From NCBI GenBank assembly GCA_964057225.1, contig OZ059894.1, positions 11,346,001 through 11,410,000 of the forward strand: a DNA stretch of 64,000 bases, read 5' to 3'. The notes beneath the pieces are model-generated. The model searched no databases, had not been told where the DNA came from, and saw only the letters and a program-made list of their open reading frames with translations. Source of the DNA: Auanema rhodensis. Taxonomy: Eukaryota; Animalia; Nematoda. The position numbers were made by a program, and so were the translations under genes. Of the stretch, positions 1-44,105 are shown piece after piece (the first letter of the stretch is position 1; the number at the start of each line of letters is the position of its first letter).

Positions 1-196
1 GAACATTTTCTCACACAAGGGTCCCCCCTTACCTACTTTTTTTCTCATTACTCGTTTCAACCTCATCCGATCACTCTGCAAACATGTTTAATCGTTCTAA
101 CTTGTTGAAATACGTCTTAAAAGTCTAAACAACATGCATATGCATAATAGAAACCACCCGAATAGGCCCCCACGCACTAAACGAGATATATACATT

Positions 197-362
197 ACCA
201 GTATAGTAATAGAACACATATTGAAGATTAATTCGATAAGAACAATTTATTGACGTAGAGAATGTTTGTTCCGAAAAACTACAATATTAAACTATAAAAG
301 TAACAAAAGCGTAGAGGCAGCAAAGACATGAATAAACATAAATGTAAATACAGAATTACCAG
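197..362 (-). mobile_element. Diverged relic of the U2-targeted non-autonomous element (3' tail + degenerate U2 nt 39-79 + first 10 nt of element head); same offset in all 24 units
   Basis: 197-247 ACCAGTATAGTAATAGAACACATATTGAAGATTAATTCGATAAGAACAATT aligns with 16065-16115; 248-291 TATTGACGTAGAGAATGTTTGTTCCGAAAAACTACAATATTAAA aligns with 15288-15331; weaker similarity may extend to ~510. Confidence 0.8.
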
Positions 363-562
363 GTAGTACATAAGTATGACAAAAAATTATAAGAAAGCCA
401 TGAAAATAGAAGGTTTGTGAACAAATGAGAGGTACATCTTTGATCGTATAGTCATTTCTAAACCGTTCGTATGCTGCAGCATCGTCATAAGCGTCACTCA
501 AGTTGAATTTCCATGTGTACTACACGATTTTCATTCTTATTGTTACATTCTTTCCCTGAGGG

Positions 563-748
563 AATGGGCCGTTCCCGCCAGCAGTGCAAGAGCGGGTCGA
601 CCCGTGAGGTGGAGCTAGCAAGCCAGCATCTACCTCAAGTCTCAAAAATCGGTTAACCTTATTGTGAACCAATGGAACACATATCGAAGGTTAATTCGAT
701 AAGAACGATTACTACACTTTGATCTTAGCCAAAAGGCCGAGAAGCGAT
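563..748 (-). ncRNA. U2: U2 snRNA
   Basis: Minus strand ATCGCTTCTCGGCCTTTTGGCTAAGATCAAAGTGTAGTA..., stem IIa TATCGAA/TTCGATA, Sm site GATTTTTGA, stem IV loop TTGCAC; ~186 nt, 3' end approximate. Confidence 0.97.
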
Positions 749-1669: not shown

Positions 1670-1811
1670 AATGTCATATTCTTCATTATCAGTTATATCA
1701 CTCTAAATCTTGTTGTTAATAGATACGACCACAAAGAAAACAACAGGAACAGTAACAATAACAAAAAAAATTTTTTTTTCACCTATGTGTCTAAAGGTTA
1801 GCCATGTATCC

Positions 1812-1814
<3 letters not shown>

Positions 1815-1855
<41 letters not shown>
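1815..1855. repeat. (TA)n microsatellite (representative; one per unit, ~12 to ~39 repeats)
   Basis: Pure TA run; shortest 47649-47673, longest 35719-35797. Confidence 0.97.
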
Positions 1856-1857
<2 letters not shown>

Positions 1858-1925
1858 ACAGTAAAAAGTCCAATCAAGAGAGAAATTTTTTCAACACATA
1901 GTTGTTTTTTTTTTAAATATCATTG

Positions 1926-2011
1926 TTTTTCCTCATAACTCGGTTTAAACTCGTTCTAACCCGTTGAAATACGTCTAGAAAGTCTTTATAACATGCATAT
2001 GTATGATAGAA
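1926..2011. repeat. Diverged spacer direct repeat (partner at ~2516-2630)
   Basis: CGTTCTAACCCGTTGAAATACGTCTAGAAAGTCT...AACATGCATATG versus CGTTCTAACTTGTTGAAATACGTCTTAAAAGTCT...AACATGCATATG. Confidence 0.8.
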
Positions 2012-3040
2012 CTTCATATTTATTGTAATAGAAAATTTTATTTTCAGACGTCTTGGTTAACAATGATATGTTTTACCCCCTTATAATTTTTATCATAATG
2101 TTCCTTATACGGAACGCTCAATGAAACTTGCTTCCAGAAAAATTTCTTTCTATTTTTTCTTCATATGTACGTAGATACTATAGAGAACTATGATAGAAAA
2201 CTTTAACATTCACGAAATCATCATTTCTCATTACGCTACGGAGGTTTAAAAAGCTGTGTTTTACCTTATAATAGACCGGAAAACCCTTGTGTTAAAACTG
2301 GACCGTTTTTACACATATAAAAATGTCCCGTATTCGGGACCCTAATGTAACTTTTGATTCCCTATATTTTTTTTCATGAAATTTACAATCTACTGTAGAA
2401 AGAAGAATTATTTTTATAAAAACTGTAAATTTTTGAAAAATGAAAACAAAACGAAAACAAAAACAACTTTTTTTTGAACATTTTCTCACCACACAAGGGT
2501 CCCCCCTTACCTACTTTTTTTCTCATTACTCGTTTCAACCTCATCCGATCACTCTGCAAACATGTTTAATCGTTCTAACTTGTTGAAATACGTCTTAAAA
2601 GTCTAAACAACATGCATATGCATAATAGAAACCACCCGAATAGGCCCCCACGCACTAAACGAGATATATACATTACCAGTATAGTAATAGAACACATATT
2701 GAAGATTAATTCGATAAGAACAATTTATTGACGTAGAGAATGTTTGTTCCGAAAAACTACAATATTAAACTATAAAAGTAACAAAAGCGTAGAGGCAGCA
2801 AAGACATGAATAAACATAAATGTAAATACAGAATTACCAGGTAGTACATAAGTATGACAAAAAATTATAAGAAAGCCATGAAAATAGAAGGTTTGTGAAC
2901 AAATGAGAGGTACATCTTTGATCGTATAGTCATTTCTAAACCGTTCGTATGCTGCAGCATCGTCATAAGCGTCACTCAAGTTGAATTTCCATGTGTACTA
3001 CACGATTTTCATTCTTATTGTTACATTCTTTCCCTGAGGG

Positions 3041-3226
3041 AATGGGCCGTTCCCGCCAGCAGTGCAAGAGCGGGTCGACCCGTGAGGTGGAGCTAGCAAG
3101 CCAGCATCTACCTCAAGTCTCAAAAATCGGTTAACCTTATTGTGAACCAATGGAACACATATCGAAGGTTAATTCGATAAGAACGATTACTACACTTTGA
3201 TCTTAGCCAAAAGGCCGAGAAGCGAT
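3041..3226 (-). ncRNA. U2: U2 snRNA
   Basis: Copy of 563-748. Confidence 0.97.
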
Positions 3227-3668
3227 ACAGCATAGCCATGAGTATCAAAGACATCAAGCAAATGTATCGTACTTGTTACGAGTGCACTCTCTCATTTGAA
3301 TATAAAAGTGTGGTTTGACAATCTTGACTGTACAGGTCATAAATGGCTCATATAAACTGTGGATTTACTCAACTTTTGGACTTATTTTTTTCTTATTCGA
3401 AGCGCTGCACTTTTTTCTATTCTTTTTATTCAAATACTTGTATATAGTTTTATATGTACGGTTGCAAAGTTTCCGAATATTTTATATATTTTTATACAAT
3501 AATTAGGAGAAGGTTAATACAATGAAATCTCCCAACTTTACAGTGTTTGTATTGCTTACAGTATCTAGAACAACCACTCTTGTAATATTAGAGCACATAT
3601 CAATCAACAACTTTTTCTAGTTATCAAAGCTTTTTTATTTCTTCAAGATATTTCAAATAAAATATAAA

Positions 3669-3787
3669 AGCTTACGACACCCGGGATTCCCAAGCCGTCT
3701 CCGATCCAAGTACTAACCGGGCCCAACGTTGCTTGACTTGCCAGATCGGACGGGATGGCGTACTTTCAACGTGGTATGGTCGTAAGC
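3669..3787 (-). rRNA. 5S: 5S rRNA
   Basis: Copy of 1191-1309. Confidence 0.97.
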
Positions 3788-8136: not shown

Positions 8137-10213
8137 AATGGTTTATTGAATAACTAATGTTATGATACAATAAATAACCAATAAAAAAGAGCCCAGAATC
8201 GGGGAGACGGTATTACCAGTACAACTTAAAACAGCAAGTAATTAAAAAGTACATAATAAGACACATTGCCAACAGAGGCTAAAACGACTCAAGAGTCGGG
8301 GGAGTGGGTTAAAAAAAATGAACAAAAAAATGAATATTAAAGCAGAACAATGAGAAATCAAGTGCCGCTATGATCAAACAATTTGAGTGCCTACGGCAAT
8401 GATGTTAAAAATAAACAACAAAATACATGTACCAATGAAGGTCAGAAAGAAAGAAACAAAAGACAAAAATAAGTAATACAAAAAGTAAATACATTACAAT
8501 CAAATCACAAACAAGTCAATTGATAATTTCTTCTTCATATTGCCTTACACTAGAAACATGTTCCACGTAGATATTCCTGGCCCACTTGATGGTATCGGCG
8601 ACGACGAGCTTCTCCATTAGCCGGTTGTAGTGGCTGCTGATCTTGAGTGATCGGAGGGCTTGTCCGTTGAGCGGGTCCATAGTTCCAAGCATTCCTACGA
8701 CATATGCTTCTACACTAGTCTTATAACCAAGACATTGGTATTGGCTGGCTATGTCAGCATATTTCCTCTCCTTTATCATACGCGCGGCTATCATGGCTTG
8801 ACGGCGGTTTTCATAGCTCACTGTAACATCAACGATACTACAGTGTTTTGCGTCATGATCGACCACTACTATGTCAGGTCGGAGTGTACTATTAATGCCA
8901 GGAAGAGGCTGGTTAGTGTAAACTTCTCCGTTTTTAGGCTCTGGCAGGGCTTTGATAAGACGGTCCACGATGTTGTTGTGGCGGAGTTGGATTGCTCTCG
9001 TGTGAGAGTGGCAGTGTCCAAGAACATGTGCAGCAGTTTCGTTGGAGTAACTACACCTGCGGCACTGTTTGTTTCCTTCTCCGTGTCTTCTACAGCCATT
9101 GAGCTGGAGAGTATTGAGTCGAGCCTTGTGGATGAATCGCCAATCAGCAAACCGTATGAAATCTCCCTTCGCCATAAAGTGATTGGACGCTTTGTTGAGC
9201 ATTGTGACATCAAAGACTTTCCCTTGATCCGGTTTTTGAAGAAGGATCCGAAGGTCTTTCAGCCATAATGCACGTCGCAGGCTTCTGTGGCATAGTGAAG
9301 GTGTTAACAGTTGGTTGTTTAGATTGAGTTCTAAACCACTTTCGAGGCATGTCCAGTTAGCGTTGATGAGTTTCTTGAGTTGACGCATCGCTACTCTTAC
9401 TCTAGTCCAGATGGAGGAAACATCAGATGTTTCGGTGTCGAAAATGCCATCAACGGAACCGTTGTAATATGCAGCTGTCTCATCGTTACTGGCTTGACGT
9501 TTAATCCTTTTTGATGCTACTTTTTTTGAGTCTTGATGCGCAATATCAGCTACTACAAGATCAGATGACTTCAAAAGTTGGTAGGCATGAGTGACTTCAC
9601 AGACGTCTGACAGGTGTTGGAGTCGAGAGAGACCAAGTCCGCCGTAGTTAGTTGGCAGGTAGATTGGTTCAGCACTGGCGTTTGGAGGATAGTGCATCCA
9701 TCTACGGGCACAGCGTTTGAGTTCTTTGTCAAAGGCGACTAGTTTACTCTTTGGGACGTGGCCATTCGTCATATGAAAATTAAGGCAGGGCATCAGGAAG
9801 GTGCGTACTGCGTCAGCTTTCTGCCATTCAGCAAGTAAGGATTTGTCAATTTTTTCCAAGTGTTGACTCATAATATTCACTGTTGGAACCGCAGACTTAT
9901 GTAAATGCATTCCAGTAGGGATTCCCAGGTGGGAGTAGCTGTCGAATTTGCTGAGAGCGGGTAGAGAGGAGCTCTGTAGCATGTATGAGGCTGTTGATAT
10001 TTTCCCTTTGTCGATCGTCAAGGTGGCGCATTTCGCTGGTTTGAAGGTCAAGCCTGTGAAATTAGCCGCATTTGATGCTGCGTCCAACATTTTCTGTAGA
10101 TCTTCTGATGATGAGGAGACCAGGGCAAGGTCATCGGCGTACGCTAGCACAGCGATGTTGTGGTTGTGTAGCTTATAGCCAGTAGAGGATTCCAAGATGG
10201 TTTTAATTAGAGG
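8137..10213 (-). mobile_element. 5'-truncated Utopia-like non-LTR retrotransposon inserted in U2
   Basis: Nearly identical to 39236-41313; same 3' junction; truncated inside the RT domain just after the FNLAIE motif. Confidence 0.95.
8516..10213 (-). pseudogene. C-terminal ~565 codons of Utopia RT/RLE ORF (5'-truncated)
   Basis: YADD, GGLG, CCHC knuckle, RHN, RPD and KERKY motifs present; N-terminal RT motifs missing; first 26 codons of the listed ORF are U2 DNA. Confidence 0.9.
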
Positions 10214-15287: not shown

Positions 15288-16115
15288 TATTGAAGTAGAT
15301 AATGTTTGTCCCGGAGGACTACAATATTAAAATAATTACTGAAGCCCGAAGGCAGCGAGAAATAGTAAGGATACTACCTGCACTGAGTGCGTCGTATCAT
15401 AAAAAAAGAGATAGCTAATGGGCAAGTTGAAGAGCTTGAAATTAACAATGACGTCACTAGAAGTAAAGTTTTCTATCTGCAGCTGCGGGTAAAGAGGGTC
15501 AGCGTAAGCAGAATTCAATTCTACCAACAATTAGTGGGAACATTGAGAGAACAGATGAAGGAGGAAATTGTAACTTCAAGTAAAATAGATTATATCTTCA
15601 GCTGCGGGTAAAGAGAGTCAGCTTTGTACAGATTACTAGTTTACATAAGAAGTGGTAACATTTCAAAAAAGGAGCACAACATAAAAAACGAGACTACGGA
15701 CTATGAGGTAAATGTTATCATTGTCTGGATCGATGATTCGGCATTTGATTGCAGCTGCGGATTGAGTGGATCAGCTTGCATGGCGTCCGCATTCGACATC
15801 AGGGAAAATGATGAGTTTCTTGAGGTCCGGCTCGGCGGGCTGTTATGTCCTATTCCCTGTTGATGGTGTTGTTGTCCTTGAGCTTGTTCTTCTTCCCAGA
15901 AAAAAAAAACTGTGAAGCTGAAGAGTCCTATTAAACGTCTTTAAACGCAAGATTAATAAGAAGCTACTACAGCTAACACAGGACCGCCTCAAGGCCTGGT
16001 AGATCAACCAGTGTTGCTTCAATCACCAAGTATTGCGGCCTGGGCCCTTGGATCAATTCACAACACCAGTATAGCAATGGAACACATATCGAAGGTTAAT
16101 TCGATAAGAACGATT
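15288..16115 (-). mobile_element. 828-bp non-autonomous U2-targeted retroelement (SINE/SIDE-like), copy 1: 787 bp unique + 41 bp of U2 nt 39-79
   Basis: Inserted at the Utopia site; no long ORF; 3' tail resembles the Utopia 3' UTR; identical copy in next unit. Confidence 0.85.
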
Positions 16116-16153
16116 ACTACACTTTGATCTTAGCCAAAAGGCCGAGAAGCGAT
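16075..16153 (-). pseudogene. U2: U2 snRNA 5' fragment (nt 1-79)
   Basis: Exact U2 to ...GTTCCATTG, then element-specific CTATACTGG. Confidence 0.9.
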
Positions 16154-18590: not shown

Positions 18591-19418
18591 TATTGAAGTA
18601 GATAATGTTTGTCCCGGAGGACTACAATATTAAAATAATTACTGAAGCCCGAAGGCAGCGAGAAATAGTAAGGATACTACCTGCACTGAGTGCGTCGTAT
18701 CATAAAAAAAGAGATAGCTAATGGGCAAGTTGAAGAGCTTGAAATTAACAATGACGTCACTAGAAGTAAAGTTTTCTATCTGCAGCTGCGGGTAAAGAGG
18801 GTCAGCGTAAGCAGAATTCAATTCTACCAACAATTAGTGGGAACATTGAGAGAACAGATGAAGGAGGAAATTGTAACTTCAAGTAAAATAGATTATATCT
18901 TCAGCTGCGGGTAAAGAGAGTCAGCTTTGTACAGATTACTAGTTTACATAAGAAGTGGTAACATTTCAAAAAAGGAGCACAACATAAAAAACGAGACTAC
19001 GGACTATGAGGTAAATGTTATCATTGTCTGGATCGATGATTCGGCATTTGATTGCAGCTGCGGATTGAGTGGATCAGCTTGCATGGCGTCCGCATTCGAC
19101 ATCAGGGAAAATGATGAGTTTCTTGAGGTCCGGCTCGGCGGGCTGTTATGTCCTATTCCCTGTTGATGGTGTTGTTGTCCTTGAGCTTGTTCTTCTTCCC
19201 AGAAAAAAAAAACTGTGAAGCTGAAGAGTCCTATTAAACGTCTTTAAACGCAAGATTAATAAGAAGCTACTACAGCTAACACAGGACCGCCTCAAGGCCT
19301 GGTAGATCAACCAGTGTTGCTTCAATCACCAAGTATTGCGGCCTGGGCCCTTGGATCAATTCACAACACCAGTATAGCAATGGAACACATATCGAAGGTT
19401 AATTCGATAAGAACGATT
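18591..19418 (-). mobile_element. 828-bp non-autonomous U2-targeted retroelement, copy 2
   Basis: Same sequence and junctions as 15288-16115 (offset 3303 bp). Confidence 0.85.
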
Positions 19419-26875: not shown

Positions 26876-27317
26876 ACAGCATAGCCATGAGTATCAAAGA
26901 CATCAAGCAAATGTATCGTACTTGTTACGAGTGCACTCTCTCATTTGAATATAAAAGTGTGGTTTGACAATCTTGACTGTACAGGTCATAAATGGCTCAT
27001 ATAAACTGTGGATTTACTCAACTTTTGGACTTATTTTTTTCTTATTCGAAGCGCTGCACTTTTTTCTATTCTTTTTATTCAAATACTTGTATATAGTTTT
27101 ATATGTACGGTTGCAAAGTTTCCGAATATTTTATATATTTTTATACAATAATTAGGAGAAGGTTAATACAATGAAATCTCCCAACTTTACAGTGTTTGTA
27201 TTGCTTACAGTATCTAGAACAACCACTCTTGTAATATTAGAGCACATATCAATCAACAACTTTTTCTAGTTATCAAAGCTTTTTTATTTCTTCAAGATAT
27301 TTCAAATAAAATATAAA

Positions 27318-27436
27318 AGCTTACGACACCCGGGATTCCCAAGCCGTCTCCGATCCAAGTACTAACCGGGCCCAACGTTGCTTGACTTGCCAGATCGGAC
27401 GGGATGGCGTACTTTCAACGTGGTATGGTCGTAAGC
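27318..27436 (-). rRNA. 5S: 5S rRNA (three-copy unit)
   Basis: Copy of 1191-1309. Confidence 0.97.
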
Positions 27437-27677
27437 AATGTTATATTCTTCATTATCAGTTATATCACTCTAAATCTTGTTGTTAATAGTTAGGACCACA
27501 AAGAAAACAACAGGAACAGTAACAAATGAAATGCCCAAACTTTACAGTGTTCGAGTTATTTACAGTATCTAAGACTACCTCTGTCGTGTTATTAGAGCAA
27601 ACATTCGATTAACAACAACTTTTTTTTAGTTATCAAAGCTTTTTTATTTCTTCAAAAAATTTCAAATAAAATATAAA

Positions 27678-27796
27678 AGCTTACGACACCCGGGATTCCC
27701 AAGCCGTCTCCGATCCAAGTACTAACCGGGCCCAACGTTGCTTGACTTGCCAGATCGGACGGGATGGCGTACTTTCAACGTGGTATGGTCGTAAGC
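27678..27796 (-). rRNA. 5S: 5S rRNA (extra copy in three-copy unit)
   Basis: Copy of 1191-1309. Confidence 0.97.
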
Positions 27797-28037
27797 AATG
27801 TTATATTCTTCATTATCAGTTATATCACTCTAAATCTTGTTGTTAATAGTTAGGACCACAAAGAAAACAACAGGAACAGTAACAAATGAAATGCCCAAAC
27901 TTTACAGTGTTCGAGTTATTTACAGTATCTAAGACTACCTCTGTCGTGTTATTAGAGCAAACATTCGATTAACAACAACTTTTTTTTAGTTATCAAAGCT
28001 TTTTTATTTCTTCAAAAAATTTCAAATAAAATATAAA

Positions 28038-28156
28038 AGCTTACGACACCCGGGATTCCCAAGCCGTCTCCGATCCAAGTACTAACCGGGCCCAACGTTG
28101 CTTGACTTGCCAGATCGGACGGGATGGCGTACTTTCAACGTGGTATGGTCGTAAGC
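28038..28156 (-). rRNA. 5S: 5S rRNA (three-copy unit)
   Basis: Copy of 1191-1309. Confidence 0.97.
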
Positions 28157-28298
28157 AATGTCATATTCTTCATTATCAGTTATATCACTCTAAATCTTGT
28201 TGTTAATAGATACGACCACAAAGAAAACAACAGGAACAGTAACAATAACAAAAAAAATTTTTTTTTCACCTATGTGTCTAAAGGTTAGCCATGTATCC

Positions 28299-28348
<50 letters not shown>

Positions 28349-29528
28349 ACAGTAAAAAGTCCAATCAAGAGAGAAATTTTTTCAACACATAGTTGTTTTT
28401 TTTTTAAATATCATTGTTTTTCCTCATAACTCGGTTTAAACTCGTTCTAACCCGTTGAAATACGTCTAGAAAGTCTTTATAACATGCATATGTATGATAG
28501 AACTTCATATTTATTGTAATAGAAAATTTTATTTTCAGACGTCTTGGTTAACAATGATATGTTTTACCCCCTTATAATTTTTATCATAATGTTCCTTATA
28601 CGGAACGCTCAATGAAACTTGCTTCCAGAAAAATTTCTTTCTATTTTTTCTTCATATGTACGTAGATACTATAGAGAACTATGATAGAAAACTTTAACAT
28701 TCACGAAATCATCATTTCTCATTACGCTACGGAGGTTTAAAAAGCTGTGTTTTACCTTATAATAGACCGGAAAACCCTTGTGTTAAAACTGGACCGTTTT
28801 TACACATATAAAAATGTCCCGTATTCGGGACCCTAATGTAACTTTTGATTCCCTATATTTTTTTTCATGAAATTTACAATCTACTGTAGAAAGAAGAATT
28901 ATTTTTATAAAAACTGTAAATTTTTGAAAAATGAAAACAAAACGAAAACAAAAACAACTTTTTTTTGAACATTTTCTCACACAAGGGTCCCCCCTTACCT
29001 ACTTTTTTTCTCATTACTCGTTTCAACCTCATCCGATCACTCTGCAAACATGTTTAATCGTTCTAACTTGTTGAAATACGTCTTAAAAGTCTAAACAACA
29101 TGCATATGCATAATAGAAACCACCCGAATAGGCCCCCACGCACTAAACGAGATATATACATTACCAGTATAGTAATAGAACACATATTGAAGATTAATTC
29201 GATAAGAACAATTTATTGACGTAGAGAATGTTTGTTCCGAAAAACTACAATATTAAACTATAAAAGTAACAAAAGCGTAGAGGCAGCAAAGACATGAATA
29301 AACATAAATGTAAATACAGAATTACCAGGTAGTACATAAGTATGACAAAAAATTATAAGAAAGCCATGAAAATAGAAGGTTTGTGAACAAATGAGAGGTA
29401 CATCTTTGATCGTATAGTCATTTCTAAACCGTTCGTATGCTGCAGCATCGTCATAAGCGTCACTCAAGTTGAATTTCCATGTGTACTACACGATTTTCAT
29501 TCTTATTGTTACATTCTTTCCCTGAGGG

Positions 29529-29714
29529 AATGGGCCGTTCCCGCCAGCAGTGCAAGAGCGGGTCGACCCGTGAGGTGGAGCTAGCAAGCCAGCATCTACC
29601 TCAAGTCTCAAAAATCGGTTAACCTTATTGTGAACCAATGGAACACATATCGAAGGTTAATTCGATAAGAACGATTACTACACTTTGATCTTAGCCAAAA
29701 GGCCGAGAAGCGAT
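29529..29714 (-). ncRNA. U2: U2 snRNA
   Basis: Copy of 563-748. Confidence 0.97.
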
Positions 29715-37165: not shown

Positions 37166-37607
37166 ACAGCATAGCCATGAGTATCAAAGACATCAAGCAA
37201 ATGTATCGTACTTGTTACGAGTGCACTCTCTCATTTGAATATAAAAGTGTGGTTTGACAATCTTGACTGTACAGGTCATAAATGGCTCATATAAACTGTG
37301 GATTTACTCAACTTTTGGACTTATTTTTTTCTTATTCGAAGCGCTGCACTTTTTTCTATTCTTTTTATTCAAATACTTGTATATAGTTTTATATGTACGG
37401 TTGCAAAGTTTCCGAATATTTTATATATTTTTATACAATAATTAGGAGAAGGTTAATACAATGAAATCTCCCAACTTTACAGTGTTTGTATTGCTTACAG
37501 TATCTAGAACAACCACTCTTGTAATATTAGAGCACATATCAATCAACAACTTTTTCTAGTTATCAAAGCTTTTTTATTTCTTCAAGATATTTCAAATAAA
37601 ATATAAA

Positions 37608-37726
37608 AGCTTACGACACCCGGGATTCCCAAGCCGTCTCCGATCCAAGTACTAACCGGGCCCAACGTTGCTTGACTTGCCAGATCGGACGGGATGGCGT
37701 ACTTTCAACGTGGTATGGTCGTAAGC
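37608..37726 (-). rRNA. 5S: 5S rRNA (single-copy unit)
   Basis: Copy of 1191-1309; left flank of copy a, right flank of copy b. Confidence 0.97.
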
Positions 37727-37867
37727 AATGTCATATTCTTCATTATCAGTTATATCATCTAAATCTTGTTGTTAATAGATACGACCACAAAGAAAACAAC
37801 AGGAACAGTAACAATAACAAAAAAAATTTTTTTTTCACCTATGTGTCTAAAGGTTAGCCATGTATCC

Positions 37868-37907
<40 letters not shown>

Positions 37908-39087
37908 ACAGTAAAAAGTCCAATCAAGAGAGAAATTTTTTCAACACATAGTTGTTTTTTTTTTAAATATCATTGTTTTTCCTCATAACTCGGTTTAAAC
38001 TCGTTCTAACCCGTTGAAATACGTCTAGAAAGTCTTTATAACATGCATATGTATGATAGAACTTCATATTTATTGTAATAGAAAATTTTATTTTCAGACG
38101 TCTTGGTTAACAATGATATGTTTTACCCCCTTATAATTTTTATCATAATGTTCCTTATACGGAACGCTCAATGAAACTTGCTTCCAGAAAAATTTCTTTC
38201 TATTTTTTCTTCATATGTACGTAGATACTATAGAGAACTATGATAGAAAACTTTAACATTCACGAAATCATCATTTCTCATTACGCTACGGAGGTTTAAA
38301 AAGCTGTGTTTTACCTTATAATAGACCGGAAAACCCTTGTGTTAAAACTGGACCGTTTTTACACATATAAAAATGTCCCGTATTCGGGACCCTAATGTAA
38401 CTTTTGATTCCCTATATTTTTTTTCATGAAATTTACAATCTACTGTAGAAAGAAGAATTATTTTTATAAAAACTGTAAATTTTTGAAAAATGAAAACAAA
38501 ACGAAAACAAAAACAACTTTTTTTTGAACATTTTCTCACACAAGGGTCCCCCCTTACCTACTTTTTTTCTCATTACTCGTTTCAACCTCATCCGATCACT
38601 CTGCAAACATGTTTAATCGTTCTAACTTGTTGAAATACGTCTTAAAAGTCTAAACAACATGCATATGCATAATAGAAACCACCCGAATAGGCCCCCACGC
38701 ACTAAACGAGATATATACATTACCAGTATAGTAATAGAACACATATTGAAGATTAATTCGATAAGAACAATTTATTGACGTAGAGAATGTTTGTTCCGAA
38801 AAACTACAATATTAAACTATAAAAGTAACAAAAGCGTAGAGGCAGCAAAGACATGAATAAACATAAATGTAAATACAGAATTACCAGGTAGTACATAAGT
38901 ATGACAAAAAATTATAAGAAAGCCATGAAAATAGAAGGTTTGTGAACAAATGAGAGGTACATCTTTGATCGTATAGTCATTTCTAAACCGTTCGTATGCT
39001 GCAGCATCGTCATAAGCGTCACTCAAGTTGAATTTCCATGTGTACTACACGATTTTCATTCTTATTGTTACATTCTTTCCCTGAGGG

Positions 39088-39235
39088 AATGGGCCGTTCC
39101 CGCCAGCAGTGCAAGAGCGGGTCGACCCGTGAGGTGGAGCTAGCAAGCCAGCATCTACCTCAAGTCTCAAAAATCGGTTAACCTTATTGTGAACCAATGG
39201 AACACATATCGAAGGTTAATTCGATAAGAACGATT
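39088..39235 (-). pseudogene. U2: U2 snRNA 3' fragment (nt 39-186) downstream of full-length Utopia
   Basis: U2 match ends at ...GAACGATT (39235). Confidence 0.92.
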
Positions 39236-42200
39236 AATGGTTTATTGAATAACTAATGTTATGATACAATAAATAACCAATAAAAAAGAGCCCAGAATCG
39301 GGGAGACGGTATTACCAGTACAACTTAAAACAGCAAGTAATTAAAAAGTACATAATAAGACACATTGCCAACAGAGGCTAAAACGACTCAAGAGTCGGGG
39401 GAGTGGGTTAAAAAAAAATGAACAAAAAAAATGAATATTAAAGCAGAACAATGAGAAATCAAGTGCCGCTATGATCAAACAATTTGAGTGCCTACGGCAA
39501 TGATGTTAAAAATAAACAACAAAATACATGTACCAATGAAGGTCAGAAAGAAAGAAACAAAAGACAAAATAAGTAATACAAAAAGTAAATACATTACAAT
39601 CAAATCACAAACAAGTCAATTGATAATTTCTTCTTCATATTGCCTTACACCAGAAACATGTTCCACGTAGATATTCCTGGCCCACTTGATGGTATCGGCG
39701 ACGACGAGCTTCTCCATTAGCCGGTTGTAGTGGCTGCTGATCTTGAGTGATCGGAGGGCTTGTCCGTTGAGCGGGTCCATAGTTCCAAGCATTCCTACGA
39801 CATACGCTTCTACACTAGTCTTATAACCAAGACATTGGTATTGGCTGGCTATGTCAGCATATTTCCTCTCCTTTATCATACGCGCGGCTATCATGGCTTG
39901 ACGGCGGTTTTCATAGCTCACTGTAACATCAACGATACTACAGTGTTTTGCGTCATGATCGACCACTACTATGTCAGGTCGGAGTGTACTATTAATGCCA
40001 GGAAGAGGCTGGTTAGTGTAAACTTCTCCGTTTTTAGGCTCTGGCAGGGCTTTGATAAGACGGTCCACGATGTTGTTGTGGCGGAGTTGGATTGCTCTCG
40101 TGTGAGAGTGGCAGTGTCCAAGAACATGTGCAGCAGTTTCGTTGGAGTAACTACACCTGCGGCACTGTTTGTTTCCTTCTCCGTGTCTTCTACAGCCATT
40201 GAGCTGGAGAGTATTGAGTCGAGCCTTGTGGATGAATCGCCAATCAGCAAACCGTATGAAATCTCCCTTCGCCATAAAGTGATTGGACGCTTTGTTGAGC
40301 ATTGTGACATCAAAGACTTTCCCTTGATCCGGTTTTTGAAGAAGGATCCGAAGGTCTTTCAGCCATAATGCACGTCGCAGGCTTCTGTGGCATAGTGAAG
40401 GTGTTAACAGTTGGTTGTTTAGATTGAGTTCTAAACCACTTTCGAGGCATGTCCAGTTAGCGTTGATGAGTTTCTTGAGTTGACGCATCGCTACTCTTAC
40501 TCTAGTCCAGATGGAGGAAACATCAGATGTTTCGGTGTCGAAAATGCCATCAACGGAACCGTTGTAATATGCAGCTGTCTCATCGTTACTGGCTTGACGT
40601 TTAATCCTTTTTGATGCTACTTTTTTTGAGTCTTGATGCGCAATATCAGCTACTACAAGATCAGATGACTTCAAAAGTTGGTAGGCATGAGTGACTTCAC
40701 AGACGTCTGACAGGTGTTGGAGTCGAGAGAGACCAAGTCCGCCGTAGTTAGTTGGCAGGTAGATTGGTTCAGCACTGGCGTTTGGAGGATAGTGCATCCA
40801 TCTACGGGCACAGCGTTTGAGTTCTTTGTCAAAGGCGACTAGTTTACTCTTTGGGACGTGGCCATTCGTCATATGAAAATTAAGGCAGGGCATCAGGAAG
40901 GTGCGTACTGCGTCAGCTTTCTGCCATTCAGCAAGTAAGGATTTGTCAATTTTTTCCAAGTGTTGACTCATAATATTCACTGTTGGAACCGCAGACTTAT
41001 GTAAATGCATTCCAGTAGGGATTCCCAGGTGGGAGTAGCTGTCAAATTTGCTAAGAGCGGGTAGAGAGGAGCTCTGTAGCATGTATGAGGCTGTTGATAT
41101 TTTCCCTTTGTCGATCGTCAAGGTGGCGCATTTCGCTGGTTTGAAGGTCAAGCCTGTGAAATTAGCCGCATTTGATGCTGCGTCCAACATTTTCTGTAGA
41201 TCTTCTGATGATGAGGAGACCAGGGCAAGGTCATCGGCGTACGCTAGCACAGCGATGTTGTGGTTGTGTAGCTTATAGCCTGTAGAGGTTTCCAAGATGG
41301 TTTTAATTAGAGGTTCAATGGCAAGGTTGAACAGGATCGGAGATAGTGGGGATCCTTGTAACACACCTGCGTGAACTGGAATGGTCGAAGTGAGTCCGGA
41401 GCCTGTCTGGATTCTTGTAGAGGCATCTGTGTATAGAGCTCGTACTCGGGATATTGAGGCTTCAGCCATTCCTGACCATCTTAGAACGTCTAGCAGAGTT
41501 TCGTGTGGCAGCGATCCAAAAGCGTTTGCGAGATCAAGCCAAGCAATTGCAATTTTCTCACGTTTACGTTTAGCGTCCGCAATGGTACTTTGCAACATAA
41601 AGTTGTGTTCCATGCATCCAGCTTTGGCCACAAAGCCCTTTTGGGAGGGAGAAAGTCTTTTTTCTGCTCTTGCCCATGTTAGCAGTCGATGCGTAAGACA
41701 AGCTGAGTACGTCTTACCAATTGTGCACGAAAGTGCTATTGGTCGCCAGTTGTTAATGTCAGCTTTATCACCTTTCTTATGGATGAGGACGGTGGTCGAC
41801 TCTTTCCAGGAAAAAGGGATGTGTCCTAGCTTGTGTACGGTGTTAAATATCGCTGCTAATATGTGACCTCCTTGGTCAAATTTCTTCCAGTGCGAGTATC
41901 GAAGTCCATCAGCTCCTGGAGCCGTATCGCTGCAACGTCGTATGCGTTCCCAGACTTCCAAAGGGGTGAAAACACCTTCTAGTGGGTCGGTACTAGCTGG
42001 CAAATCCGGTCTGGTGACTGTGATGGGGAGGGCTGGGCCTTGACTGCTGTGAACAGAAAGGAAGTGTTTTTCAACCTCTGCAGATGGTATGGTGCAGGTT
42101 TCACTTTGTTCTCCGAGCAGTTGTCGAAAGGCTTTCTTCTTGTTGGCCCTCCAAAGCTTCTGGAGCTTCATCGCCTGGGTTTTTTGGTCTTCCTCAGGTT

Positions 42201-42946
42201 GTGTGTGTGGTCGGCGCCTTTGTCGGAAGTTGGGAACTTTGATCATAATGTCAAGAGACTTTCTGATTGTGTCTACCAACTCTTCCAGGACCTGCTCGAG
42301 CTCACTTTTGCACACTACCTTTTTAATTCTATCCACCCAAATATTTTCAGAGTTTCTATTCGGATCAGGGTCGGCAAAAGATGGTTCTGTACTCGGAACC
42401 CTGATCTCGTTGAATATTTCACTCTCTCGCGGAAGGGGGGAAACTTCGGCCTCTGGGGACAAGTCCAGAATTGGGGCCTCAAACAAGCGTACCGTTGATG
42501 GAGATCCTTGTTCCTGTCCACTGGATGATGTTTCCTCCATTGTACGCTCCTCCACGGGCGGGGTGGTCGTCCTTGTGCCTGGTGGGCGGGTGTTCCTGAT
42601 CCTCCGCAATATAGGGCGGGAACTGGGCTCTCTCGGAGATAGAGGTGAGATCACCACAGTTTCCTCTATGATGCGGAGACATCCTTCAGCTTTTTTCTGA
42701 TGGCTTTTAACGGCCTTCAGATTGCTGGTGAGGCCACAGGCACGGCACTCAAATTCTACTCTGACCTCATGTTCTCTCCGAAGATGGCGGACGAGACCAT
42801 TGTGGTCTGAGTAGGATCGCGGAATAGGAGCGCAGATTGAACACGAAAAAGGGCTCTGAAGAGGCACCTTTAGCTTGTAAAGCCCTTGCTCCATCTCTAG
42901 CAGATCTAAAGACTTACGTAGTACAGTTGCAATATCGATTTAGCCA
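39236..42946 (-). mobile_element. Utopia-like (NeSL group, RLE-type) U2-specific non-LTR retrotransposon with intact ORF
   Basis: Single ORF ZnF-RT-CCHC-RLE; 380-nt 3' UTR ending AATAAACCAT(T) joined to U2 nt 38/39; no LTRs; U2 target plus RLE endonuclease indicates Utopia rather than APE-bearing Keno. Confidence 0.95.
39616..42894 (-). CDS. Non-LTR retrotransposon protein: N-terminal zinc fingers, reverse transcriptase, CCHC knuckle, restriction-like endonuclease (1092 aa)
   Basis: CSIC..HLRREH and CRAC..H..C fingers; APGADG, WRPIAL, QKGF, LDLANAFGS, GVLQGSPLSPILFN, YADD, HLG; CRRC..ETAAHVLGHC; RHN, RPD..D, KERKY; in-frame TAA 16 codons upstream of the ATG. Confidence 0.97.
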   Translation of the reverse strand: MEQGLYKLKVPLQSPFSCSICAPIPRSYSDHNGLVRHLRREHEVRVEFECRACGLTSNLKAVKSHQKKAEGCLRIIEETVVISPLSPREPSSRPILRRIRNTRPPGTRTTTPPVEERTMEETSSSGQEQGSPSTVRLFEAPILDLSPEAEVSPLPRESEIFNEIRVPSTEPSFADPDPNRNSENIWVDRIKKVVCKSELEQVLEELVDTIRKSLDIMIKVPNFRQRRRPHTQPEEDQKTQAMKLQKLWRANKKKAFRQLLGEQSETCTIPSAEVEKHFLSVHSSQGPALPITVTRPDLPASTDPLEGVFTPLEVWERIRRCSDTAPGADGLRYSHWKKFDQGGHILAAIFNTVHKLGHIPFSWKESTTVLIHKKGDKADINNWRPIALSCTIGKTYSACLTHRLLTWARAEKRLSPSQKGFVAKAGCMEHNFMLQSTIADAKRKREKIAIAWLDLANAFGSLPHETLLDVLRWSGMAEASISRVRALYTDASTRIQTGSGLTSTIPVHAGVLQGSPLSPILFNLAIEPLIKTILETSTGYKLHNHNIAVLAYADDLALVSSSSEDLQKMLDAASNAANFTGLTFKPAKCATLTIDKGKISTASYMLQSSSLPALSKFDSYSHLGIPTGMHLHKSAVPTVNIMSQHLEKIDKSLLAEWQKADAVRTFLMPCLNFHMTNGHVPKSKLVAFDKELKRCARRWMHYPPNASAEPIYLPTNYGGLGLSRLQHLSDVCEVTHAYQLLKSSDLVVADIAHQDSKKVASKRIKRQASNDETAAYYNGSVDGIFDTETSDVSSIWTRVRVAMRQLKKLINANWTCLESGLELNLNNQLLTPSLCHRSLRRALWLKDLRILLQKPDQGKVFDVTMLNKASNHFMAKGDFIRFADWRFIHKARLNTLQLNGCRRHGEGNKQCRRCSYSNETAAHVLGHCHSHTRAIQLRHNNIVDRLIKALPEPKNGEVYTNQPLPGINSTLRPDIVVVDHDAKHCSIVDVTVSYENRRQAMIAARMIKERKYADIASQYQCLGYKTSVEAYVVGMLGTMDPLNGQALRSLKISSHYNRLMEKLVVADTIKWARNIYVEHVSGVRQYEEEIIN

Positions 42947-43005
42947 TTAACCTTATTGTGAACCAATGGAACACATATCGAAGGTTAATTCGATAAGAAC
43001 GATTA
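42947..43005 (-). pseudogene. U2: Internal U2 fragment (nt ~38-96) at 5' end of Utopia
   Basis: TTAACCTTATTGTGAACC...GAACGATTA matches U2 exactly; U2 nt 1-37 absent. Confidence 0.9.
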
Positions 43006-43919
43006 AAAATTTAAATTTTAAAAATTTCTTTCTATTTTTTCTTCATATGTACGTAGATACTATAGAGAACTATGATAGAAAACTTTAACATTCACGAAAT
43101 CATCATTTCTCATTACGCTACGGAGGTTTAAAAAGCTGTGTTTTACCTTATAATAGACCGGAAAACCCTTGTGTTAAAACTGGACCGTTTTTACACATAT
43201 AAAAATGTCCCGTATTCGGGACCCTAATGTAACTTTTGATTCCCTATATTTTTTTTCATGAAATTTACAATCTACTGTAGAAAGAAGAATTATTTTTATA
43301 AAAACTGTAAATTTTTGAAAAATGAAAACAAAACGAAAACAAAAACAACTTTTTTTTGAACATTTTCTCACACAAGGGTCCCCCCTTACCTACTTTTTTT
43401 CTCATTACTCGTTTCAACCTCATCCGATCACTCTGCAAACATGTTTAATCGTTCTAACTTGTTGAAATACGTCTTAAAAGTCTAAACAACATGCATATGC
43501 ATAATAGAAACCACCCGAATAGGCCCCCACGCACTAAACGAGATATATACATTACCAGTATAGTAATAGAACACATATTGAAGATTAATTCGATAAGAAC
43601 AATTTATTGACGTAGAGAATGTTTGTTCCGAAAAACTACAATATTAAACTATAAAAGTAACAAAAGCGTAGAGGCAGCAAAGACATGAATAAACATAAAT
43701 GTAAATACAGAATTACCAGGTAGTACATAAGTATGACAAAAAATTATAAGAAAGCCATGAAAATAGAAGGTTTGTGAACAAATGAGAGGTACATCTTTGA
43801 TCGTATAGTCATTTCTAAACCGTTCGTATGCTGCAGCATCGTCATAAGCGTCACTCAAGTTGAATTTCCATGTGTACTACACGATTTTCATTCTTATTGT
43901 TACATTCTTTCCCTGAGGG

Positions 43920-44105
43920 AATGGGCCGTTCCCGCCAGCAGTGCAAGAGCGGGTCGACCCGTGAGGTGGAGCTAGCAAGCCAGCATCTACCTCAAGTCTC
44001 AAAAATCGGTTAACCTTATTGTGAACCAATGGAACACATATCGAAGGTTAATTCGATAAGAACGATTACTACACTTTGATCTTAGCCAAAAGGCCGAGAA
44101 GCGAT
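43920..44105 (-). ncRNA. U2: U2 snRNA
   Basis: Copy of 563-748. Confidence 0.97.

Follow-up and report, generated by a model that had tools for sequence, protein, structure and literature searches.

Non-LTR retrotransposons of the Utopia family carry a restriction-like endonuclease and are specific for U2 snRNA genes (Kojima and Jurka 2015, PMC4640811). At the insertion site of Utopia and Keno, U2 resumes at nt 39, and Utopia copies were 'occasionally inserted in tandem in U2 genes'; another Utopia formed the 3' flank in 20 of 94 cases in Nasonia vitripennis (PMC4640811). The 5' junctions of Utopia are variable, and 20-bp target duplications were described in the reptile families (PMC4640811). 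How retrotransposons that are specific for an essential gene persist was an open question of the same study (PMC4640811). In another host array, the rDNA of stick insects, dead copies of R2 multiply by unequal recombination (Martoni et al. 2015, PMC4370867). The relic described here, which lies behind the U2 genes of a nematode U2-5S array, is a new instance that combines these two known phenomena, tandem stacking of Utopia and the spread of a dead element by concerted evolution. The live elements of the array belong to the known family Utopia, together with a non-autonomous rider.

The window, the whole stretch of 64,000 nt from Auanema rhodensis that was analysed (contig OZ059894.1, positions 11,346,001 to 11,410,000 of the forward strand), is a minus-strand tandem array with a unit of 2,478 bp that contains U2 and two 5S genes. 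The unit is made up of U2 (1-190), a spacer of ≈ 1.37 kb, two 5S genes in a 360-bp duplication and a spacer of 0.44 kb, and the U2 gene thus recurs every ≈ 2.48 kb. Using Rfam, we identified 21 complete or near-complete U2 genes, six partial U2 matches and 44 5S genes in the window, all on the minus strand; no Rfam families beyond U2 and 5S were detected there. Alignment of the canonical unit to the window gave identities of 98-100% among units, and U2 nt 1-38 was present in 23 exact copies. The unit downstream of the full-length element described below (37166-39236) had one 5S gene instead of two, and another unit (26876-29714) had three. The 360-bp 5S module varies in copy number among units. 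The first unit provides the reference gene:

559 to 748, minus strand: complete U2 snRNA gene of the first unit (unit 1-190), Rfam RF00004, 148.4 bits, model positions 1-192

The unit-to-unit pattern was broken at four places, by two copies of an 828-bp non-autonomous element (N828) and by one truncated and one full-length retrotransposon:

8138 to 10212, minus strand: 5'-truncated autonomous copy (element positions 1693-3768), 99.6% identical to the full-length copy
15288 to 16115, minus strand: N828 copy 1, a young 828-bp non-autonomous element recognised from its sequence, between U2 nt 1-38 and nt 39-190
18591 to 19418, minus strand: N828 copy 2, with 0 differences from copy 1 over 828 nt
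39237 to 43004, minus strand: full-length autonomous Utopia-type element, identified by its ORF, RVT_1 and motifs, then U2 nt 39-190
43005 to 43019, minus strand: 15-nt AT filler that joins the head of the full-length element to unit position 1089 of the upstream unit, identified by comparison with the canonical unit

N828 consists of U2 nt 39-79 and 787 specific bases, including a tail that ends in CAATA. Its loci read U2(1-79), the 787 specific bases and U2(39-190). The full-length element has U2 nt 39-96 as its head and a 1092-aa ORF at 39616-42894. Pfam RVT_1 matched residues 371-593 of this ORF (E 6e-28), and we found a C2H2 motif at 18-42, YADD, a CCHC motif at 911-928, RPD at 972, D989 and K1008/1011. 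An AP endonuclease (Exo_endo_phos) was sought in the ORF and gave no match. The architecture is that of Utopia: a single ORF with an N-terminal zinc finger, reverse transcriptase, a C-terminal CCHC motif and a restriction-like endonuclease motif. The best named homologues (38-44% identity) were scorpion copies located in U2, proteins from nematodes and one from Dendroctonus ponderosae, which is among the listed hosts of Utopia (PMC4640811). By its predicted architecture and its insertion site, the autonomous element is classed as a Utopia.

The 3' end adjoined U2 nt 39 in N828, in both autonomous copies and in the relic, whereas the 5' junctions varied (U2 nt 79, 96 and 155, and unit position 1089). 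The truncated copy sits between U2 nt 1-155 and U2 nt 39-190, with the fusion at 10213/10212. The full-length copy was preceded not by U2 nt 1-38 but by a complete U2 gene and 899 nt of its flank (unit 1-1089; 43020-44105). The junction of position 1089, filler and nt 39 looks like the repair of a second cut at nt 38/39, or like the use of an RNA that began at nt 39. The tails of the two kinds of element were compared as well. No blastn similarity was detected between the tail of N828 or of the relic and that of the autonomous element outside the U2 head, and a MAFFT alignment of N828 with the autonomous tail (39237-39340) gave only scattered short motifs (TATTGTA, AACATTA, TTCAATA). By this comparison, N828 and the relic do not appear to share a tail of the SINE/LINE type with the autonomous element of the window. 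The autonomous partner of N828 may lie outside the window; tails of other families at nt 39 were seen in public reads, so the partner may be found elsewhere. These other tails adjoining U2 nt 39 appeared as loose contig ends.

The relic occupies unit 455-557 (window 294-192 in the first unit) and was present in each of the 24 units with a U2 3' end. It is composed of an N828-like 3' tail (47 nt), U2 nt 39-79 (36/41) and the first 10-15 nt of the N828 head. Reading away from the U2 gene of the first unit, the features are as follows:

341 to 558, minus strand: U2 3' flank (F1; unit 191-408), no similarity to any element in the window
295 to 340, minus strand: weaker stretch that may extend the tail relic upstream (unit 409-454), collinear with N828 ≈ 743-781 in a permissive alignment
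248 to 294, minus strand: 3' tail relic of an N828-type element (copy A), ending in ...CAATA, 39/47 versus the N828 3' end
207 to 247, minus strand: relic of U2 nt 39-79, a U2-derived head or target duplication, 36/41 versus the U2 gene
192 to 206, minus strand: start of the head of copy B, CTATACTGGT (206-197) and 3/5 of the next bases, versus N828 positions 42-56

The original prediction, that a tail, a degenerate U2 39-79 and the head bases CTATACTGGT follow one another in every unit, was borne out in 24/24 units and far beyond chance. The tail relic matched the last 47 nt of N828 at 39 positions, and both stop at the same base (CAATA/AAT), as had been noted for the junctions of the young inserts. 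Its Smith-Waterman score was 59, compared to 21.2 ± 2.4 (maximum 31) in 500 dinucleotide shuffles (z ≈ 16), and blastn gave an E of 1.5e-10 against N828. The similarity to the element was significant against shuffled controls also in the tail, outside the U2-derived 41 bp. The U2 piece begins exactly at nt 39, where Utopia and Keno insert; its last base, nt 79, is the 5' junction of the young N828 copies. The ten bases that follow (CTATACTGGT, 206-197) were identical to the N828 head, and 13/15 matched when five more bases were included; together with the U2 piece they gave a blastn E of 1.9e-15 against N828. We also constructed an N828 junction of tail and head. The relic aligned to it without gaps over 103 nt with 89 identities, and the score of 77 compares to 12.6 ± 1.7 in shuffles (z ≈ 38). 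Ten of the 14 differences were GC>AT transitions, and all five differences between the U2 piece and the U2 gene were C>T or G>A. A bias of this kind is expected if sequence decays neutrally in an AT-rich genome.

The relic is a remnant and not an intact tandem. Copy A is represented by 47-93 nt and copy B by 10-15 nt, and neither has kept its body. None of the 24 relics carried an insertion, in agreement with the earlier statement that the degenerate U2 piece shows no new ones, and the relic is without U2 nt 1-38. Two further statements were correct in part. A fossil had been placed directly behind U2; it is present in each unit, but it becomes recognisable only 218-264 nt behind the U2 3' end. 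Similarly, ≈ 315 bp behind U2 had been described as ending in a diverged tail. The distance from the U2 3' end (559) to the junction ...CAATA/AATTGTTCTT at 248/247 (minus strand, first unit) is 311 nt, and of this stretch only the last 47 nt can be called element-like with security. The match runs on collinearly to ≈ 93 nt in a permissive alignment, and this extension, which is non-significant on its own, is plausible. The remainder was without element similarity.

This last point bears on the proposal that element DNA now supplies the 3' flank of U2, which our data did not support. Comparison of F1 and of unit 191-454 with N828, the autonomous element and the 3' UTR of the latter, on both strands, gave no significant match. 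With blastn at word size 7 on both strands, the best E for F1 was only ≈ 0.2, and local alignments of F1 to the elements scored no better than those of shuffles. We did not find a second copy of F1 elsewhere in the unit, nor a remnant of U2 nt 80-190 or a second tail in the whole unit. A candidate for a second, older relic within F1 (TTCTTAT...TACTACCTGGTAAT, by eye U2 39-79 and head) was rejected, its alignment scores being equal to those of shuffles. The 3' box of U2, if any, would fall in F1, that is, in sequence that is not demonstrably element-derived. A low-depth RNA contig ran from U2 nt 156 to unit position 485, a hint that read-through from U2 may extend into the relic.

The relic resembles tandem Utopia in its site at nt 39 and in that an element 3' end is followed by another copy. 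It differs in that it is dead, ≈ 100 nt long, located in the 3' flank of an intact gene and fixed in every unit of a U2-5S array. Furthermore, its parent was non-autonomous, with a tail that differs from that of the autonomous element of the window, and its U2 piece measures 41 nt, and that of the autonomous family 58 nt, as compared to 0-20 nt in published Utopia. A stack of live copies was seen in a contig of the scorpion Centruroides (KZ493963.1) with homologues of the ORF; four successive junctions in it (7161, 13871, 18312 and 22491) read tail, U2 nt ≈ 39-59, head, and only one copy had U2 nt 1-59 in front. These junctions are the living form of the relic layout in another phylum. The stack comprised at least three Utopia-like copies with ≈ 20 nt of U2 between them. 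Two head types followed the U2 piece, so more than one family appears to be present in the same stack. For the spread of the relic, the dead R2 copies of stick-insect rDNA are the nearest published precedent. As with those copies (PMC4370867), the inactive relic would have spread via recombination of the host array and not by retrotransposition. The dead R2 copies lie inside 28S genes, which they disrupt, in a fraction of the units, whereas the relic lies outside the gene in all units seen. A search of the literature for U2-5S arrays with retrotransposon relics gave nothing specific, and a metagenome scan for sister-species flanks with a clade-specific U2 20-mer gave two chance matches, neither of them U2. 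Among the closest protein relatives, the contigs for which DNA was available had no U2 flanks.

Taken at a probability of about 0.8, the relic is the dead junction of two head-to-tail N828-type copies that was homogenised through the array. Mobilisation of the N828 family would depend on a Utopia-type reverse transcriptase/restriction-like endonuclease with a nicking site between U2 nt 38 and 39. Every copy has U2 nt 39-79 on its 5' side, which may be a leader passed on from the parent or a target duplication made anew. The site is thereby reusable, and two insertions at one U2 site result in the order tail(A), U2 39-79, head(B). The later copy may have inserted at nt 38/39 before the U2-derived head of the earlier one, or the events may have occurred in the reverse order. 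The earlier suggestion of one element inserted into the U2-derived head of another agrees with the 89/103 junction match, and the opposite order agrees equally well. Copy A would have been joined by its 5' end to the U2 3' flank of the preceding unit and not to U2 nt 38; alternatively, later deletions would give the same result. An extant precedent for a 5' junction in the flank is the full-length copy at unit position 1089 with its filler. The losses would have comprised the greater part of A, almost the whole of B and the truncated U2 nt 80-190, and one intact U2 gene would have been left upstream. Since only 10-15 nt of B and 47-93 nt of A are left, the insertion order and the number and ends of the deletions are not reconstructable.

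Unequal crossing-over or gene conversion would have spread the unit with the relic through the whole array, and the scar would have decayed by AT-biased transitions before the last homogenisation. Unit 191-620 was identical in 24/24 units save for one SNP (position 192), which lies outside the relic. In public reads from runs labelled as three organisms, flank and relic were found in single contigs at full flank depth. A joint that skips the relic was sought in the contigs of the three runs and none was found, although contigs can hide rare variants. The 24 identical decayed relics and the full-depth contigs indicate that array turnover fixed the relic once it had already undergone most of its decay; this is the sweep through the array that had been envisaged. 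The relic also dates the association: the N828-type family was stacking in tandem before the last array-wide homogenisation, ≈ 12-14% decay ago.

An alternative is that U2 was re-synthesised at integration, by a long target duplication or by a switch of the reverse transcriptase to U2 or pre-U2 RNA. The functional U2 would then stem from a healed gene, and the 311 nt behind it would be element-derived. Several observations fit this idea, which was part of the original prediction. U2 nt 1-155 instead of nt 1-38 stands before the truncated autonomous copy; U2 sequence in front of or within N828 and the full-length element reaches nt 79 and nt 96, respectively; and the U2 genes found upstream of Utopia in Phytophthora are intact, as opposed to stubs of nt 1-38 (PMC4640811). 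The lack of detectable similarity of unit 191-408/454 to any element speaks against it. Chimeric retrocopies of snRNA and LINE sequences, such as the U6-L1 chimeras, arise by template switching. Such a switch would be the mechanism by which U2 is rebuilt, and the junction of U2(1-155) with the truncated element has that look. At the relic, a direct fusion of element and U2 RNA is absent: 218-264 nt of non-U2, non-element DNA intervene between U2 and the element remnant, whereas the fusion is present at the truncated copy (nt 155). Mature U2 RNA cannot template the 218-264 nt behind the U2 3' end. If copy B was already present, a downstream break of the top strand would duplicate B too and would not give an intact U2.

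In a tandem array, moreover, a junction of the deletion type is equivalent: an upstream U2(1-x) that looks duplicated reads the same as a 5' end joined to position x in the unit before, the remainder of which was lost, and rebuilding is therefore unnecessary. The layout would also result from joining to the preceding unit's flank, and a junction of this type, with filler DNA, exists. The junction at position 1089 looks like end-joining at a site cut at nt 38/39 rather than RNA-templated rebuilding. Private SNPs in unit 39-1089, which would tell duplication from deletion, were sought in the window and none were found. We consider the re-synthesis of U2 at this locus unlikely. It is likewise doubtful that integration regularly regenerates a complete U2 gene and flank upstream and that every functional U2 of the array descends from such a self-healing insertion. 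If true, self-healing insertion would explain the persistence of retrotransposons specific for an essential and often low-copy gene. The wider interest of the locus hinges on the idea, as yet unproven, that the target gene is spared or regenerated at integration, and the variable 5' junctions could decide whether Utopia-type integration duplicates its target and so spares the gene.

It is highly improbable that a junction piece of ≈ 100-150 nt was copied from a tandem pair elsewhere into a break in the U2-5S spacer, as a templated filler or short conversion patch, and then spread. The relic is short with sharp borders and unrelated sequence on both sides, the unit holds no remnant of U2 nt 80-190 and no second tail, and filler DNA is present at another junction of the array, all of which would fit a patch. 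We found no direct evidence for one, and a patch requires a rarer event than local insertion and deletion in an array that is the demonstrated target of the element. Finally, that the tail-like sequence was the ancestral U2 flank, captured by the 828-bp element as its tail and head start, is hardly credible: alignment alone gives no polarity, but the adjoining U2 fragment starts at nt 39 and ends at nt 79, the signature of an insertion, the tail is common to a second subfamily (below), and it is the flank copy that has decayed (by GC>AT changes from the U2 gene, whose ancestral state is known), a polarity that makes flank capture very unlikely.

The reads gave further information on the tandem partners, the N828 family. 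A second non-autonomous subfamily was found in contigs of the runs; it has the head and tail of N828 (15288-15407, 15980-16115) and a different body of 567 nt. Since this subfamily carries the same tail, the tail is a property of the element family and not a feature of the array flank. Word depths in the runs are rough measures only; on this scale, the depth of the N828 body was ≈ 9%, 13% and 19% of the flank depth in three DNA runs. Relative to the flank, both N828 and the second subfamily were far more abundant in the RNA run than in DNA. The N828 family appears to be still transcribed, and it is still present in roughly a tenth of the units. In one run, contigs at ≈ 1/3 of the flank depth, placed at window 15286/15248 and 16114/16076, read U2 to nt 78, a 17-nt insert and U2 from nt 40. 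This minimal insert, which is absent from the window, shows the same duplication of nt 39/40-78.

Nothing suggests a present function of the relic, which we regard as an inert scar; the ORFs that overlap its region were short (40-69 aa only). It represents a clean case in which the scar of a site-specific retroelement was fixed by concerted evolution and the host gene stayed intact. Two small hairpins of the UNCG type, GCC-UUCG-GGC and GUCC-UCCG-GGAC, were noted in the N828 tail (15311-15322 and 15344-15353, minus strand), and these are possible candidates for hairpins recognised by the reverse transcriptase. In the relic (271-282), the second hairpin (GUUU-UUCG-GAAC) could still pair and the first is broken. 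A search of N828 and its junctions against Rfam for a self-cleaving ribozyme or other RNA family gave only U2-derived matches and noise. Among these, the U2 model scored 74 bits at 16028-16153, across U2 nt 1-79 and the first 47 N828-specific bases, and a chimeric N828 transcript may retain some U2-like fold.
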